Shown: positions 50,505-59,571, counted from the whole stretch's first letter. The stretch is 63,081 nucleotides of DNA, filler included, from Ministeria vibrans ATCC 50519 (GCA_943704425.1; 9 parts of 9 records of this genome joined end to end with filler, not necessarily neighbours in it); one strand, 5' to 3'. Notes: generated by a model from the letters alone, not told the origin. Numbers and translations are program-made.

Positions 50505-53500
50505 GCCGCCGAATGGAAAGACACTCATTGCGCACTCTGAAGATGGAAGCCAGGCACAATGGCCCACATATGAGCTGAACATTCCGTAACTGCATCCAAC
50601 AGAATGCACTGATGTAGTACTCATTGACTCGCTTTTCTTTTTTCAGTGGCATTCTGCGTCCGTGCGACATTGCGTTCTCTGCGGCACTGGCTCGTGGGTC
50701 AGTGGTGAGTCGGTCGATCAAAGTGCTGCTTTTGGGTGCGACGGGGGCAGGCAAGACTGCTCTGGTGGCTGCGCTGAGGGGCGAGACACTGCCGGGCGAA
50801 GAGGACCGGCCGGTGGCAACGTGCGTGCACAAACTGCGGATGGTCTACCACGAGGGGACGGGGGTGTTTGTGCCGGTGGAGGAGTTTCATCTGAGGAGTG
50901 TGATGGGGGTGAAGGCGGAGGAGAAGGAAGAGGAAGTGGCAGAGGACACGAACAGCACTGATGAGGAGGCAGCTGGTCCATCCCACGCGGCGGCTGAGCC
51001 TCACCACCCATCAACCACAGCTCCACCTACTGTCACGCCTGTTTCAGCGCCGCATGCAGACGCCGGATCAGTGAGTGTCAGCAGTGCACCATCTCGTGAC
51101 GCGCCCACAGTCGCACCGTCGGCTGAGCCCACAATGTCAACGGAGATGTCGTTTGTGCGAGGACTGTTGGAGAGCGAGCTGCGTGAAGAGCACGTTGACA
51201 TGGACATATTTGACTTTGCAGGTGAGATAAAGTAAAAATCATATTCTGTGCAGTTGCTGACGTATATTGATTTGCTTTGTCGACAGGTGAGTCGATGTAC
51301 GATTCACTTCCAGCACTGTTCATGGGCTCCGAGTCGGTGTACGTGCTTGTCTTTGATCTGTCCGTCATGAACGATGCTCTCAAAGCGCAACGACAGTACG
51401 AGCACCTGTCGAAGTGGGCGGACATTATTGCACACCAGGTGCCCACCACGGCCGAGTCGTACTTCCGCGTCATTATTGTCGGCACTCACATTGACACGTT
51501 CGCCGAGAACACCGTCCCTGACGATCTGGTTTCGCTTGTTTCGCGTGGGATTCTGCGATTGGTCGGGCCTGTGCTGGGCAGTCACCTGATGATGCCACCG
51601 GAAACACGGGGTGTGCCGTTCTTCCAGGTGGGCAGCCGTGCGCGAGTTGGACTGGGTGCAGTGATCACGGCGATGCACAAGGCTGTGCGGGATCGCACAC
51701 TGCCACTTGAGTTTGTGGCGGCACAGGATCTGATTGGACGATGGGCGCGAATGGGGCGTGTGCCGCTGCTGTCGANNNNNNNNNNNNCAGTGTATGTGCT
51801 TGTCTTTGACCTGTCCGTCATGGACTTTGCTCGCAAGGCTCAACGACAGTACGAGCATCTGTCGAAGTGGGCGGACATTATTGCACATCAGGTGCCCACC
51901 ACGGCCAAGTCGTACTTCCGCGTCATCATTGTCGGCACTCACATTGACACGTTCGCCGAGAACACTGTCCCCGACGATCTGGTTTCGCTTGTTTCGCGTG
52001 AGATTCTGCGGTTGGTCGGGCCTGTGCTTGGCAGTCATCTGATGATGCCACCGGAAACACGGGGTGTGCCGTTTTTTCAGGTGGGCAGCCGTGAGCGAGT
52101 TGGACTGGGTGCAGTGAGCACGGCGATGCACAAGGCTGTGCGGGATCGCACACTGCCGCTTGAGTTTGTGGCGGCACAGGATCTGATTGGACGATGGGCG
52201 CGAATGGGGCGTGTGCCGCTGCTGTCGAGTGTGAGCTCACTGGACGGACTGGAGCTGAACGACGATCCGGTGGTGCAACTGGGGGGGATGCTGGCGAGTG
52301 AGAGTGCGATACGAGAGGGGCTTGTGCCGTATCTGGAGAGTGCTGCAGACATTCTGGTGTGTCGTGAGGATGCGACGAGTGAGGTTGTGAAGGGAACGGA
52401 CACGATTGTGTTTGATGTGCCGCGACTGATTGGAGCGCTGGAACTGTTGTGCTCGGTGGTGATGGCGCAGTGGGGACGCGCGACGAGCAAGCGAGCGCAG
52501 GCGATGTTGCGCGAGGTGACTGCGGCGGGCCTGGCACACGCAGACGACGGAATGCGGCGGACGACGCGACTTCTGGGCGAGCTGGACGCGTCGAAAGAGC
52601 AGTCTGAAAGTGGGTTTCCAGCGGAGGTGGCGGAGTGGTTGGTGTGGACCGCGCCATGCAGTCGTGCTGGAGAGCTCTTTGCTGTTCCGCGTGAGGCAAA
52701 ACCAAACCCCATGGGGTTCTTTGCCAAGCTGTTTAACACTAAAACCTCTTCCCAGCCTGACCTGGTCCCTCTTCTTGCTGGCGCCGACGTCACCGACGTC
52801 TCCTCGTTCATGCTCTCGCTTGAGCGACTAAGTCTTGCTCTCCGACGCGACGACCGTCTGTTTGTGCCCATGCTCCTTCCCCACTATGCTGCATTCCTCG
52901 ACATTCCCGTCACTGTTCCCGCGCAACTTTTCCTGTACCAGTTTGTCGACGACGAGCTGCTTCCCGTCTCGCTTGCGACGTTCCACTTGCTGATGGTGGC
53001 CCTGTGGCGCACGTCGCTGCGTGGCAGTCCGATCCGGGCGACACAGCGATGCACCAATGCCATGACGATGGCGGGGTGTGCACCCGTGCGACTGCGGCTT
53101 AATGCCAACGAATCGTTTGTGCGCATTGAGGTGATGGACGACAGTGACGCTGAGCAAGTGCAGCGCACTCTGGAGCGTATCTGTGTCGCAGTGTGTGACG
53201 GAACTCGTTCACTGCGATGGGGATGGCGTGGCGATCCTGTCGTTGTTCCAGCTCATCCGTACATCCAAGACGCACCCTTGTATGCGTCTCAGTTCGACAC
53301 ATTGAACAACATGGCTGGTGTGTTCCAGGCACAAGGAGACGACAGTCGTGCTCTTGAGTACTGTGAGAGTGCTCTGACCATCCAGGAGAAGTCTCTCGGT
53401 CCCAACCACCGATCCACAGGCGACACGTTGAACAATATGGCTTGTGTGTTCCATGCACAAGGACACTACAGTCGTGCACTTGAGTACTATGAGCGTGCTC

Positions 53501-55151
53501 TGACCATCCGTGAGAAGTCTGTTGGTCCCGACCATCCATCCACAGGCAACACATTGAACAACATGGCTGGTGTGTACGAGGCACAAGGACACTACAGTCG
53601 TGCACTTGAGTACTATGAGCGTGCTCTGTCCATCCGTGAGAAGTCCCTTGGGCTCGACCATCCATCCACAGGCGGCACATTGAACAACATGGGTGATGTG
53701 TTCAAGGCACAAGGACACTACAATCGTGCATTTGAGTACTATGAGCGTGCTCTGACCATCCGTGAGAAGTCTGTTGGTCCCGACCACCCATCCACAGGCG
53801 ACGCATTGAACAACATGGCTGGTGTGTTCCAGGCACAAGGAGACTACAGTCGTGCTGTTGAGTACTATGAGCGTGCTCTGACCATCTATGTGAAGTCTGT
53901 TGGTCCCGACCATCCATCCACAGGCGACGCATTGAACAACATGGCTGGTGTGTTCAAGGCACAAGGACACTACAGTCGTGCACTTGAGTACTATGAGCGT
54001 GCTCTGACCATCCGCGAGAAGTCTGTTGGTCCCGACCACCAATCTACAGGCGACACATTGAACAACATGGCTGGTGTGTTCGAGGCACAAGGAGACTACA
54101 GTCGTGCTCTTGAGTACTATGAGCGTGATCTGACCATCCGTGAGAAGTCTGTTGGTCCCGACCATCCATCCACAGGCGGCACATTGAACAACATGGCTGG
54201 TGTGTTCGAGGCACAAGGACACTACAGTCGTGCACTTGAGTACTATAAGCGTGCTCTGACCATCTGTGAGAAGTCCCTTGGTCTCGACCACCCATCCAGA
54301 GGCGACGCATTGAACAACATGGCTGGTGTGTGCCAGGCACAAGGAGATTACAGTCGTGCACTTGAGTACTATGAGCTTGCTCTGACCATCCGTGAGAAGT
54401 CTGTTGGTCCCGACCTCTCATCCACAGGCGACACATTGAACAACATGGCTGGTGTGTTCAAGGCACAAGGAGATTACAGTCGTGCTCTTGAGTACTATGA
54501 GCGTGCTCTGACTATTTATGAGAACTTGGTTGGTGCTATGGATTCGAGAGTGGCGATTGTGGTAGAAAGTATGGCTTCGCTTTTCTTGGCCCAGCGCCAC
54601 CGCACCAAAACGCGGGTTGGTTACACTGTACGTGAATTTGCCGACCGCCGTGCTTTTTTGCGCTGTCTCGAGCGGCTCTGCCTGGTGTTTCGTCGTCAAG
54701 ATGATTTTCTGTTTGTTCCGATGCTTCTTCCGGACAGCGTGACGTCCTCCGAAACTTCCGTCCGTCATCCCATTGATGTTTTCCTTTTCCAATTTGATCA
54801 AGAAAGCGACGCTGCAATTCCAGTTACACTGACAACTTTTCACGTCATCATGGTGCAGCTTTGGCGCCAGTCCAAATCGGGCTCTCCGAGTTCAGCAACG
54901 CAGCGGAACACGGGTCTGATTGAAATGGAGGGATACGTGCCGTTCCAGATGCGACTCAACCCTAACGAGTCGTTCGTGCGTATTGAGGTGATGGACGACA
55001 GTGACGCTGAGCGAGTGCAACACACTCTAGAGCGAGTTGTTAGTATTGTGTGCGACGACACACAGTCAGCTCCGCAGGGCTGGCGCGGCTATCTCGAGTT
55101 GATTCCCGCCCATCCGTACATCCAAGACGCACCCTTGTATGCGCCTCAGTT
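50505..55151 (+). CDS. Roco-type protein: Roc GTPase, COR-like region, ten TPRs, second COR-C-like block (5'-truncated; runs into an N gap)
   Basis: G1 GATGAGKT, G3 DFAG-E (across intron 51221-51286), YVLVFDL and G4 IIVGTHID; COR-like LFVPMLL; 42-aa TPRs. Confidence 0.85.
53296..54555 (+). repeat. Ten tandem 126-bp TPR-coding repeats of high nucleotide identity
   Basis: Consensus DTLNNMAGVFxAQGxYSRALEYYERALTIREKSVGPDHPSTG repeated ten times. Confidence 0.95.
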
Positions 55152-55576
55152 NNNNNNNNNNNNNNNNNNNNNNNNNNNNNNNNNNNNNNNNNNNNNNNNN
55201 NNNNNNNNNNNNNNNNNNNNNNNNNNNNNNNNNNNNNNNNNNNNNNNNNNNNNNNNNNNNNNNNNNNNNNNNNNNNNNNNNNNNNNNNNNNNNNNNNNNN
55301 NNNNNNNNNNNNNNNNNNNNNNNNNNNNNNNNNNNNNNNNNNNNNNNNNNNNNNNNNNNNNNNNNNNNNNNNNNNNNNNNNNNNNNNNNNNNNNNNNNNN
55401 NNNNNNNNNNNNNNNNNNNNNNNNNNNNNNNNNNNNNNNNNNNNNNNNNNNNNNNNNNNNNNNNNNNNNNNNNNNNNNNNNNNNNNNNNNNNNNNNNNNN
55501 NNNNNNNNNNNNNNNNNNNNNNNNNNNNNNNNNNNNNNNNNNNNNNNNNNNNNNNNNNNNNNNNNNNNNNNNNNNC

Positions 55577-56179
55577 CGTGATGCATTGTTTGAAATTGCA
55601 GAGGTGTTTGGTTTGGCGGTGGACAAGAATGTGCTGCTGATTGTGCACTTGATTGGGCACGGTGTCGCAGGACAGCCCGGTGGTCTGGTGCTCAGCGACG
55701 CCTGTCTTCCACCAGGCAGCGACCGTGTGTCGTGCTTCAATCTGAGCACCCTCCGGGGCATTTTGGAGGGCCAACTGGGCTGGCGCGGCTGCAACTTTTG
55801 CGTGATTGGGGATTTCTGCAACTCTGGCTCGCTGGTGGAGGTGGACTTGGGGGAAGACATGCTACCCATTGCTCGTGTAGGGTACGCGCGCCAGATGCTT
55901 GCGAGCGCACTGGAGCACGCCAATGCCTACATGACGGATGATGCGAGTCAGACTCGTCTGACAGAGTTGCTCACGCGCGCTCTTGGCCCTACTTTGGAAG
56001 TGTTTCGCCCGACTGAGCAGTCACTGACTCTTCGCGAACTGCGCCGGCGTCTCTCTGAACTCGGCGACATGTTTTCCGCACGGAAGGTGGGACGCATCTG
56101 GCTTGAATGGGGCGGCACGGCCAACACGGGGGACATTGTGTTTTATCGCGAAGGCAACGGTGTTGGTCAGCACATTTAA
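55577..56179 (+). CDS. Caspase/metacaspase-like (clan CD) protease domain, probably the C-terminus of the Roco gene
   Basis: LLIVHLIGHG (His codon 55658-55660) and CVIGDFCNSG (Cys codon 55817-55819) match the clan CD catalytic dyad context. Confidence 0.7.
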   Translation, partial: RDALFEIAEVFGLAVDKNVLLIVHLIGHGVAGQPGGLVLSDACLPPGSDRVSCFNLSTLRGILEGQLGWRGCNFCVIGDFCNSGSLVEVDLGEDMLPIARVGYARQMLASALEHANAYMTDDASQTRLTELLTRALGPTLEVFRPTEQSLTLRELRRRLSELGDMFSARKVGRIWLEWGGTANTGDIVFYREGNGVGQHI

Positions 56180-56290
56180 TACTGATAAACATAATTATTA
56201 TTATTATTGTTATTTAAAAGTGCTCAAAATTTGTAATGCTATGAGATTGTACATTGATTGATTTGGGAGAGTGTGGACTGACATCTGTGA

Positions 56291-56908
56291 CTACGGACAC
56301 GTACCCCACACGGGACGCGGAAGAGACCACGCAGTTGCACCATTGTCATAGTCAACGGGAGCGATTGTGAGAAGGGGAACACACCACTGACTCAGACTAT
56401 GATATGAATGGTTAGGTGTGATTGGAAATTTTCGAGTGACTTACTCTTTGTTGAACGATGATGAAAGTCGAAACATAAAGTCCATATCACTCACACTCTA
56501 CAAACCAAATAATTAGTTGATTACATGGAAGTGCTGTGAGAAAAAACAAACGCACTGAAGTGTCAAAGGACAAAAGTTGATTGAACGAGACGGCAGAATC
56601 AAACATGAACCTCATTGAATTCACATTCTATGTGGCAATGTGACGGGAGAAAGAAAGTGAGTGAGTGTATATGTGAGATCGACGAGAGAGTAATTAAACT
56701 CGCTTTGGTGTCAAATTGGATTGGTTGATTGAATTGAGTGGCCAATTCAAATGTGGAACTCATGTCAGTGACACCCTAAAAGGAAAAAGGTTACAAACTC
56801 AATGAACACAAAGGCGCGAGAGATTAGAAAACGCACTGAGGTGTTCAGGAGAACTTTCTGATTGAATGCAGAAGCAGACTGAAACATTCCAGGGATGGTC
56901 AGCAGATT
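56291..56908 (-). CDS. DUF285/BspA-type repeat protein, 3' exons (no start found; possibly a relic)
   Basis: Exons 56837-56908, 56704-56775, 56556-56627 (72 nt each), 56445-56497 and 56291-56396 splice to xMxxMFxxAxxFNQxxxFDTS repeats ending DLSQWCV...WSLPRPVWGTCP*. Confidence 0.8.
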
Positions 56909-57558
56909 CTAAATGAAATGAAACTTTGAGTGAGAGGGAGAAAAAGTGGCAGTGAGAGTGAGGTGAGTGAAGAGTGAAAATAAATGAGAGTGAGTGTGAG
57001 AGAAAGTAAAACTATATGAAGAGAACGAGCATTAAAATGAGTTGAAACAGTGTGTAAGGAGAAATCTGAGCGACTGAGAGCAAGTGAGAGCAAAAGAAAT
57101 GAGCAAAAAGTGAGTAAAACGAGGACAGAAACAAAACAAATATCACTCACAAACGAAACAATTAGTTTCCTAGAAAGAAATCTGAAGTGTCAAAAGACCA
57201 AAGTTGATTGAATGAGACGGCAGAATCAAACATGAGCCTCATTGAATTTTTATTGAATAATTGAAGAATACAACCCATTATTTTATTAATGATCAGTCTA
57301 TTGAATAATATTATTAAAGAAGAAGAAAGAGAACCATTTCCAATTGTCGTCGTTTCGTTTGTGATTGATAATAAATTGGAAATGCTTCTTCTTCTTCTTC
57401 AATTTATTATTATCAACCCCAAACCAAAGCGACAACACGAACAGCTTGAATGTAATCGTAAACAAAAAAAAATGAATAATTCTTTCTTCCAGCAGTAAGG
57501 TTTATTATTATTATTGTTATTATTACTGTTCATTGACATTTTTTTCTTGACCAACACG

Positions 57559-59265
<1,707 letters not shown>

Positions 59266-59480
59266 CTGATTGTGTAACATGTATGGGATTACAAATTATT
59301 GCGTCGCGGTTGATTGATCATTCATTGACATGATTGTAGTCATGATCAAAATGCGTTTGCAGCTGATTGCATTTGGTACGTTGGATTGCATTGTAGAATT
59401 GATTGATTGAAATAATTATTGTTTTTTGATGCCTTTGATCAATTGGCAGATATGGAATGAATCACGAATCAACATAATAA

Positions 59481-59571
<91 letters not shown>

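Follow-up and report, generated by a model that had tools for sequence, protein, structure and literature searches.

Fusions of a Roc GTPase and a COR domain with a C-terminal effector have been described in bacteria. Kaur, Iyer, Burroughs and Aravind (eLife 2021; PMC8195603) reported LRR-AP-GTPase(Roc)-COR proteins that end in one of at least 24 effector domains, a caspase being one of them; the bacterial AP-GTPase-COR proteins have many paralogs per genome and were interpreted as conflict systems. A characterised gasdermin-activating protease of Runella zeae is labelled 'Roc-COR-CHAT', and its His/Cys dyad is required to cleave the death effector (Johnson et al., bioRxiv 10.1101/2021.06.07.447441). 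Roco families were also proposed as receptors in the brown alga Ectocarpus, which has an LRR-Roco expansion, and in Trichoplax (PMC4104024). Here we describe a Roco-family locus on the plus strand at 50505-56179 of a window of 63,081 nucleotides (the whole stretch of DNA analysed, filler included) from Ministeria vibrans ATCC 50519 (GCA_943704425.1). The locus is probably one transcribed eukaryotic gene for a large Roco-family protein with a C-terminal caspase-like protease.

Domain order of the Roco-family locus

The gene was studied in the piece 50505-59571 of the window, where the G+C content is 52-61% in coding and 32-48% in downstream sequence. The short spliceosomal introns with GT..AG boundaries in this piece identify the host as a eukaryote. 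A single long plus-strand frame starts at 51277 and enters gap 2, a run of 424 N; it is free of stops for more than 1,400 codons across gap 1, a run of 12 N, assuming that the flanks of gap 1 are in frame. The assembled order of domains is WD40, Roc, COR-A, COR-B, ten TPRs, a second COR-B (hence termed COR-B'), a conserved linker, and a Peptidase_C14 domain with a His/Cys dyad. Contigs from four public runs (X1 and X3, RNA-like; X2 and X10, DNA) were mapped onto 51200-57000, and five related loci were retrieved for comparison. The features of the locus are the following.

50506..50585, plus strand: WD40-like exon tail (..NGKTLIAHSEDGS..), truncated at the left edge of the piece; from translation and from the WD40 exons above the Pfam threshold upstream of the Roc exon in the paralogous locus L002; the junction codon, split CC/T, preserves the frame
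50586..50646, plus strand: predicted intron of 61 nucleotides, GT..AG; from boundaries and frame check
50647..51221, plus strand: Roc exon 1 with the P-loop, an insert, and G3 DFAG at its end; from motifs and Pfam Roc profile 1-34 (E 0.039)
51222..51286, plus strand: intron of 65 nucleotides, GT..AG, spliced out in RNA; from an X1 contig and boundary check
51287..51775, plus strand: second half of Roc with G4 GTHID, reaching gap 1; from Pfam Roc profile 65-119 (E 0.032) and Ras (E 0.012)
51776-51787, plus strand: gap 1, 12 N, bridged by none of the contigs shown
51788..52228, plus strand: 95%-identical repeat of 51335-51775, left of gap 1; from self-comparison; probably an unmerged contig overlap
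52150..52879, plus strand: COR-A (model residues ~121-363); from VIA, Foldseek and ESM Atlas
52891..53294, plus strand: COR-B copy 1 (..LFVPMLLP.. to ..PLYASQ); from model residues 368-504 against LRRK2 1676-1831 and C. tepidum Roco up to 908
53296-54555, plus strand: ten 42-residue TPR units, TPR_12/TPR_10 (kinesin-light-chain-like); from Pfam and TRF
to ~54620, plus strand: degenerate TPR cap after the ten units
54661..55151, plus strand: COR-B', a second, diverged COR-B; from 59% amino acid identity to copy 1
55152..55575, plus strand: gap 2 (424 N), corresponding to a linker (..CN..L..W motif), a 55-nucleotide intron and the first ~60 caspase-like residues, by positions 149-572 of the metagenome scaffold L001
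55576..56179, plus strand: last 200 residues of the caspase-like Peptidase_C14 domain, up to the stop codon 56177-79; from the Pfam match of the full L001 domain and from AlphaFold/Foldseek
56180..56239, plus strand: 3' untranslated end of the transcript; from the end of an X3 contig and the depth drop in X1 and X3

The caspase-like domain contains HLIGHG, with the His codon at 55658-60, and DFCNSG, with the Cys codon at 55817-19. The 200-residue fragment present in the window has no Pfam match of its own, and against PDB sequences it gives chance matches only. Its match to NCBIfam caspase_w_EACC1 begins at profile position 68, as would be expected if the first third of the domain sits in gap 2. 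The whole domain, taken from L001 (349-1173), matches Pfam PF00656 Peptidase_C14 with 32 bits (cut-off 21.4, E 1.3e-7). It also matches NCBIfam NF047832, the EACC1-associated caspase, over profile positions 2-205 of 211 (35.7 bits, E 5.9e-9, the curated cut-off of 140 not being reached); judged by these profiles, the domain is homologous to NF047832 but outside that subfamily. The full L001 domain has no match to CHAT (PF12770) at E<=1 in Pfam. A profile of the 14-member family finds Arabidopsis metacaspase-4 (E 3.7e-4) with HLIGHG/DFCNSG aligned to HYSGHG/DSCHSG, and the catalytic His and Cys are invariant in all 14 sequences. The domain can thus be assigned by profile to Peptidase_C14, with a predicted catalytic His/Cys pair at the conserved positions.

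The AlphaFold model of the domain has a pLDDT of 85 and a pTM of 0.89. Foldseek gives 282 matches to it at E<=1e-3, headed by MALT1, caspase-9 and GSU0716; these, together with caspase-8 and -6 and metacaspase-4, have a probability of 1.00, so that the modelled fold is that of the caspase-hemoglobinase group. The two-copy complex prediction for the domain scored 0.19, against a mark of 0.32, and speaks neither for nor against its dimerisation. Among 1.84 billion representatives searched exhaustively with HMMER, only 11 proteins reached E<=1e-3, which makes this a narrow caspase subfamily. A candidate relative, P0010, an 824-residue Cys-rich repeat protein, was rejected as a chance match through its ..CNSGALVP.. 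motif.

The Roc domain was judged exon by exon and with the help of the paralogous locus L005, whose intron reads through in frame. The P-loop (G1) GATGAGKT lies at 50735-50758, and G3 DFAG at 51212-51221, its last codon being completed across the intron. G4 GTHID lies at 51481 and is repeated at 51934 within the duplicate beside gap 1. L005 matches NCBIfam small_GTP (E 5e-5), and the family profile matches seven LRRK2 Roc chains with E 0.09-0.9 and VGTHLD aligned. The motifs and the converging weak matches, which lie below the Pfam threshold, point to a Ras-like Roc G-domain with G1, G3 and G4.

Between switch I and G3, the Roc domain carries an insert of ~100-150 residues that is acidic at first and then rich in Pro, Ser, Thr and Ala (50880-51160 in the window; ~2200-2480 in L002; also in L003 and L005). 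The position of this low-complexity insert is conserved in all paralogs, its sequence is not, and the copy in the window has ~100 residues. Such an insert is unusual for Roc and probably explains the sub-threshold Pfam score.

The COR assignment comes from structure prediction. An AlphaFold model of 51790-53301 has a mean pLDDT of 63.5, with the COR part mostly in the 70s-80s outside two low-confidence loops. The top nine Foldseek matches of this model are all Roco proteins, and 3dpt (COR domain) has a probability of 0.99-1.00. The top five in VIA are also all Roco proteins: LRRK1 with Z 9.1, three C. tepidum Roco structures with Z 8.2-8.8, and LRRK2 with Z 7.7. About 255 residues are aligned to C. 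tepidum Roco across COR-A and COR-B (Z 8.8), and LRRK2 COR-B is matched with Z 7.2-7.7. In ESM Atlas, COR-A/Roc clusters take all ten of the nearest places, the highest score being 0.96. The models therefore place a COR-A and a COR-B directly after Roc.

The TPR array was detected by TRF (period 126, 9.7 copies, 90% matches) and by Pfam, where TPR_12 has E 1.8e-135 and 441.8 bits, and TPR_10 has 373.8 bits in ten stretches. The ten units are in register, with an inter-unit nucleotide identity of 87%. The pN/pS between them is 0.77, compared with a dN/dS of 0.29 for COR-B'; the former value is compatible with either a diversifying sensor or relaxed constraint. COR-B' (54661-55151) and COR-B copy 1 (52804-53294) have 59% amino acid identity and a dS of 1.16, and COR-B' is evolving under purifying selection. 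It is the most divergent COR-B of the family, with 38-53% identity to the paralogs versus 55-77% for copy 1. The two copies have two exact tracts of 31 and 33 nucleotides in common within a background of ~55-60% identity, which suggests small gene-conversion events between linked COR-B copies. Roco proteins do not usually have a second COR-B beside a TPR array; if it is real, it raises the question of how one chain uses two dimerisation modules.

The stretch 53295-54600 is matched by many further contigs from all runs, both DNA and RNA-like (104-812 fit two places). In these organisms the 126-nucleotide TPR unit thus seems to be one of a very large family of repeats.

What the first-pass annotation had read from the sequence agrees with these data. 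Its Roc motifs, COR-like sequence and ten TPRs are recovered on the plus strand at about the places it gave, by motif, Pfam/TRF and fold evidence, and the domain with His-Gly and Asp-x-Cys-x-Ser-Gly that it placed after the 424-N gap on the same strand corresponds to HLIGHG and DFCNSG in 55577-56176. The caspase-hemoglobinase fold on which its reading depended is the one predicted by AlphaFold and Foldseek, and its COR proposal is in line with the Roco proteins at the top of both structural searches for 51790-53301. The short spliceosomal introns agree with the eukaryotic host that it supposed. It had overlooked COR-B' after the TPRs, the introns, the WD40 exon tail, and the duplication artefact at gap 1.

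Transcript continuity and the paralogous family

Gap 2 is bridged in RNA. Two contigs, X1 record 4 (1026 nucleotides) and X3 record 29 (1698 nucleotides, 54487-56239), join 55151 to 55576 by 369 letters. In the databases the C-terminal fragment is closest to P0012 (98% identity), which is encoded on L001, a scaffold of 2076 nucleotides. The downstream 1502 nucleotides of L001 are 98.3% identical to the window, and L001 is thus the same locus in another strain. Its positions 149-572, equivalent to 55152-55575, are exactly 424 letters and include a 55-nucleotide GT..AG intron at 292-346. Since 424 minus 55 is 369, the bridging contigs are spliced RNA; since 2 + 369 + 1 is 372, or 124 codons, both sides of gap 2 share one frame. 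L001 is free of stops from ..PLYAPQ via the linker to the start of the caspase-like domain. The length of the N-run equals that of the L001 sequence, and the estimated gap size therefore appears accurate.

Further evidence of transcription comes from the ends of the contigs. An X1 contig that runs from 51284 onward has a loose end reading ..GACTTTG, the end of exon 1, which means that the intron 51222-51286 is removed in RNA. The contig depth of X1 and X3 ends near 56239, and the DNA runs X2 and X10 go on to 57000; the drop fits a transcript end ~60 nucleotides past the stop. Contigs of four runs cover the region from 54487 or 54536 to 55011 and beyond, including the end of the TPR array. The order from the TPR end through COR-B' and the linker to the caspase-like domain, all on one RNA, is well supported.

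None of the contigs shown from the four runs bridges gap 1. Its flanks, 51337-51775 and 51790-52228, form a direct duplicate that differs in 23 of 439 positions (95% identity) and abuts the gap, and the region is single-copy in every paralog that covers it. The flanks are probably overlapping contig ends, from alleles or near-paralogs, that were left unmerged by the assembler. A genuine duplication of half the G-domain was considered and rejected, because the copies abut the gap exactly and the covering paralogs are single-copy. The actual protein most likely carries one Roc domain.

The comparison with other loci places the gene in a family. Eight clusters are 50-70% identical to the Roc-COR part (504-residue query), and the linker motif that L001 has at gap 2 follows COR-B in seven of these eight paralogs. 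The architectures of three loci are as follows.

L002: WD40 exons (above the Pfam threshold), Roc exon, intron, Roc half and COR, short intron, 272-residue caspase-like domain
L003: architecture as in L002
L005, the closest paralog: Roc-COR, with the caspase domain ~180 nucleotides later

In all three, the caspase-like domain comes straight after Roc-COR, and TPRs are absent. The fusion of Roc-COR with a caspase-like domain therefore stands even if the window is chimeric across the TPR array. By these alignments the genes appear to form a lineage-restricted multigene family, to which the locus in the window would add a cassette of TPRs and COR-B'. Scans of JGI metagenome contigs with COR-B' and with the caspase alignment gave no confirmed relative. 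A search for Roc-COR homologs among proteins of 616-1960 residues found none, which reflects the short contigs in the database.

The single polypeptide proposed by the first-pass annotation holds for one of its halves: the caspase-like domain is in the same transcript and frame as the TPR/COR-B' part, through the 369-letter bridge, and it is the assembly that links the Roc-COR half to them. Closing gap 2 and looking for domain co-occurrence had been suggested as checks. The bridging contigs together with L001 put both sides of the gap in one frame and the same transcript, and Roc-COR followed by a caspase-like domain recurs in independent paralogous loci.

Downstream of the gene, an exon of the tubulin-tyrosine-ligase family lies at 58729-58953 on the minus strand (Pfam TTL, E 3.4e-14, profile 101-159 of 292). 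It belongs to a convergent neighbour gene, with more exons probably at ~58090-58380. At 56296-56836, low-depth X1 contigs omit 48 nucleotides (56397-56444) and 61 nucleotides (56775-56835) with ends CT..AC, or GT..AG when read on the opposite strand. The pattern resembles splicing of a minus-strand transcript that overlaps the region immediately beyond the Roco gene and may come from the 3' part of the tubulin-tyrosine-ligase family gene. The AT-rich intergenic region contains a long GA microsatellite at 57900-58060 and ATT microsatellites at 59480-59570 and 56190-56210, and a 67-nucleotide direct repeat with 94% identity is present at 56555-56621 and 57182-57248. An Rfam search of the piece 50505-59571 found no RNA family, and a PADLOC defence-system scan gave nothing useful.

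Alternative explanations and a proposed role

Several observations weigh against a single gene with all of these domains. The Pfam Roc matches in the window are weak and split in two halves (E 0.039 for profile 1-34 and 0.032 for 65-119), Roc in L005 reaches 26.0 bits, just below the cut-off of 27, and a Pfam search of the COR stretch found no COR match. The N-terminus of the protein falls beyond the left edge of the piece. No contig shown crosses the COR-B/TPR junction (53294/53295) or the whole TPR array, which is built of a unit that occurs very many times in these organisms, so the Roc-COR half and the TPR-COR-B'-caspase half are placed on one molecule by the assembly. Over its first 128 nucleotides L001 is 100% identical to COR-B copy 1; within the shared 33-nucleotide tract it then passes to what follows copy 2 in the window, so that a copy-1-type COR-B is joined straight to the linker and caspase. 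Positions 1-148 of L001 could represent a TPR-less allele, with an in-frame deletion of the 1857-nucleotide TPR/COR-B' cassette, or an assembly mis-path via the 33-nucleotide exact repeat. The window could accordingly be a chimera of two paralogous loci joined via the TPR array or the COR-B tracts: a TPR-less WD40-Roc-COR-linker-caspase gene like those of L001, L002 and L005, and a separate gene with TPR, COR-B' and caspase at its C-terminal end. The passage of L001 from copy 1 to the downstream side of copy 2 would fit such a join, as would the absence of TPRs from all other loci examined, the many other contigs per run that fit the TPR stretch, the contig break at 54487, and the assembly artefact already present within the gene at gap 1. 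On the other hand, the COR-B tail (..PLYASQF) runs ungapped into the first TPR unit, and a COR-B-to-TPR junction thus exists somewhere in the genome regardless. The contig depth of both COR-B copies is similar in the DNA runs, the 31- and 33-nucleotide exact tracts in their diverged background suggest exchange between linked copies, and L001 itself could be a small-k mis-path. On balance we consider a chimera somewhat unlikely.

A single gene may still have a role apart from death or defence. As a signalling or scaffolding enzyme of the Roco type, the protein could serve housekeeping, stress responses or development, with limited processing by its caspase-like domain; the protein would then be neither a pathogen sensor nor an executioner of death. 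Many Rocos (LRRK1, LRRK2, the Dictyostelium Rocos) and metacaspases have well-established non-death roles (PMC6337361), and a defence context is unreadable from a eukaryotic locus whose neighbour is a tubulin-tyrosine-ligase family gene. Such a role fits less well with the lineage-specific expansion into several diverged paralogs, the fast evolution of the TPR units (pN/pS 0.77), and the interpretation of the bacterial counterparts as conflict systems (PMC8195603); we regard it as a tentative possibility. It is very improbable that the locus is a pseudogene in decay or what is left of a gene fusion, transcribed but lacking a functional product. The odd domain order with two COR-Bs, the half G-domain duplicated around gap 1, and the confinement of the fused TPR/COR-B' form to one locus might be taken for decay, but the frame is free of stops over more than 1,400 codons (with the gap 1 flanks assumed in frame), the splice sites are correct, RNA-like contigs cover the locus, the catalytic dyad and G-motifs are intact, and the dN/dS of COR-B' is 0.29.

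For the single Roco-caspase gene that we favour, a mode of action may be proposed as the most likely. Paracaspase and initiator caspases are activated through dimerisation. COR-B is the main Roco dimer interface, and the GTPase cycle of Roco proteins is coupled to a monomer-dimer change; GTP binding and hydrolysis and dimerisation through COR-B are known for LRRK2 and for the Roco of C. tepidum (PMC6337361). In the present protein a trigger would bind to the WD40 and TPR repeats, and the nucleotide cycle of Roc together with COR-B-mediated dimerisation would alter the assembly state. The changed assembly could bring together or unlock the C-terminal protease domains, and the activated protease would cleave substrates, leading to a death or defence signal. 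GTP binding and hydrolysis, COR-B dimerisation and proteolysis by the protein in the window are all predicted from known Roco proteins and clan CD proteases, and by the same analogy it may have an immune or cell-death role.

In marine phytoplankton there are many reports of caspase-like activity and of regulated death, but the trigger of the proteases is poorly known. A protease in one chain with a nucleotide switch and with repeat sensors, encoded by a gene that has multiplied into a family, would offer a concrete and testable candidate switch for caspase-like proteases. We speculate, with low confidence, that the expanded WD40-Roc-COR-caspase family acts upstream as the sensor through which a virus or another attacker, once recognised, sets off caspase-like activity and cell death, as a GTPase-based counterpart of an NLR or inflammasome, and that at the locus in the window this sensor is diversified by a TPR/COR-B' cassette that some strains have and others lack.

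Comparison with known systems

The survey of phytoplankton metacaspases (Choi and Berges 2013, PMC3734836) does not contain GTPase, WD40 or TPR in its text, and the Roco review (PMC6337361) does not mention caspase. Full-text literature searches returned no paper that combines Roc-COR, caspase and protists, or Roco with Peptidase_C14. The architecture, which the first-pass annotation did not recognise from characterised proteins, is less isolated beside the bacterial LRR-Roc-COR-caspase proteins (PMC8195603) and the Runella Roc-COR-CHAT protein (10.1101/2021.06.07.447441).

The caspase-like domain resembles metacaspases and orthocaspases in its predicted caspase-hemoglobinase fold and in its D-x-C-x-S-G Cys motif, similar to DSCHSG; unlike in metacaspases, the protease here forms the C-terminal end of a Roco protein. 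As in LRRK1/LRRK2, DAPK1 and C. tepidum Roco, the chain contains a Roc-COR-A-COR-B tandem (fold Z 7.7-9.1) together with WD40 or other repeats, and the THxD form of G4 is common to the Roc domain of the window and LRRK2. In contrast to eukaryotic Rocos, its output is a protease rather than a kinase or death domain, and it has two COR-Bs and a large low-complexity Roc insert. The logic of sensor, switch and effector is that of NLR/STAND proteins, but a Ras-like GTPase with COR stands in the switch position, which makes the likeness an analogy and not membership; no segment has a Pfam match to NACHT or NB-ARC, and the sole P-loop domain is the Ras-like Roc.

The Runella protein, too, contains both Roc-COR and a caspase-like protease of clan CD. 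It differs in that its protease is CHAT (PF12770) whereas that of the window is Peptidase_C14, and in that its substrate gene adjoins the protease in an operon. In the bacterial LRR-Roc-COR-effector proteins a single chain carries the repeat sensor, the Roc-COR switch and, at its C-terminus, the effector, and there are multiple paralogs per genome; the family described here is alike in these respects. This combination of repeats, Roc-COR and C-terminal effector is found as Roc-COR-caspase in L002, L003 and L005, and as COR-B'-caspase in the RNA of the locus. In contrast to the bacterial proteins, the gene is eukaryotic and spliced, has WD40 and TPR repeats instead of LRR, carries a second COR-B, and has its own narrow caspase subfamily. 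The basic architecture is thus known in bacteria, and what is novel here, as far as found, is a eukaryotic, spliced form with WD40 and TPR, a doubled COR-B and a lineage-private C14 subfamily. It extends to eukaryotes an architecture of repeats, Roc-COR and caspase that was so far bacterial, and bears on death and immunity modules across the domains of life.

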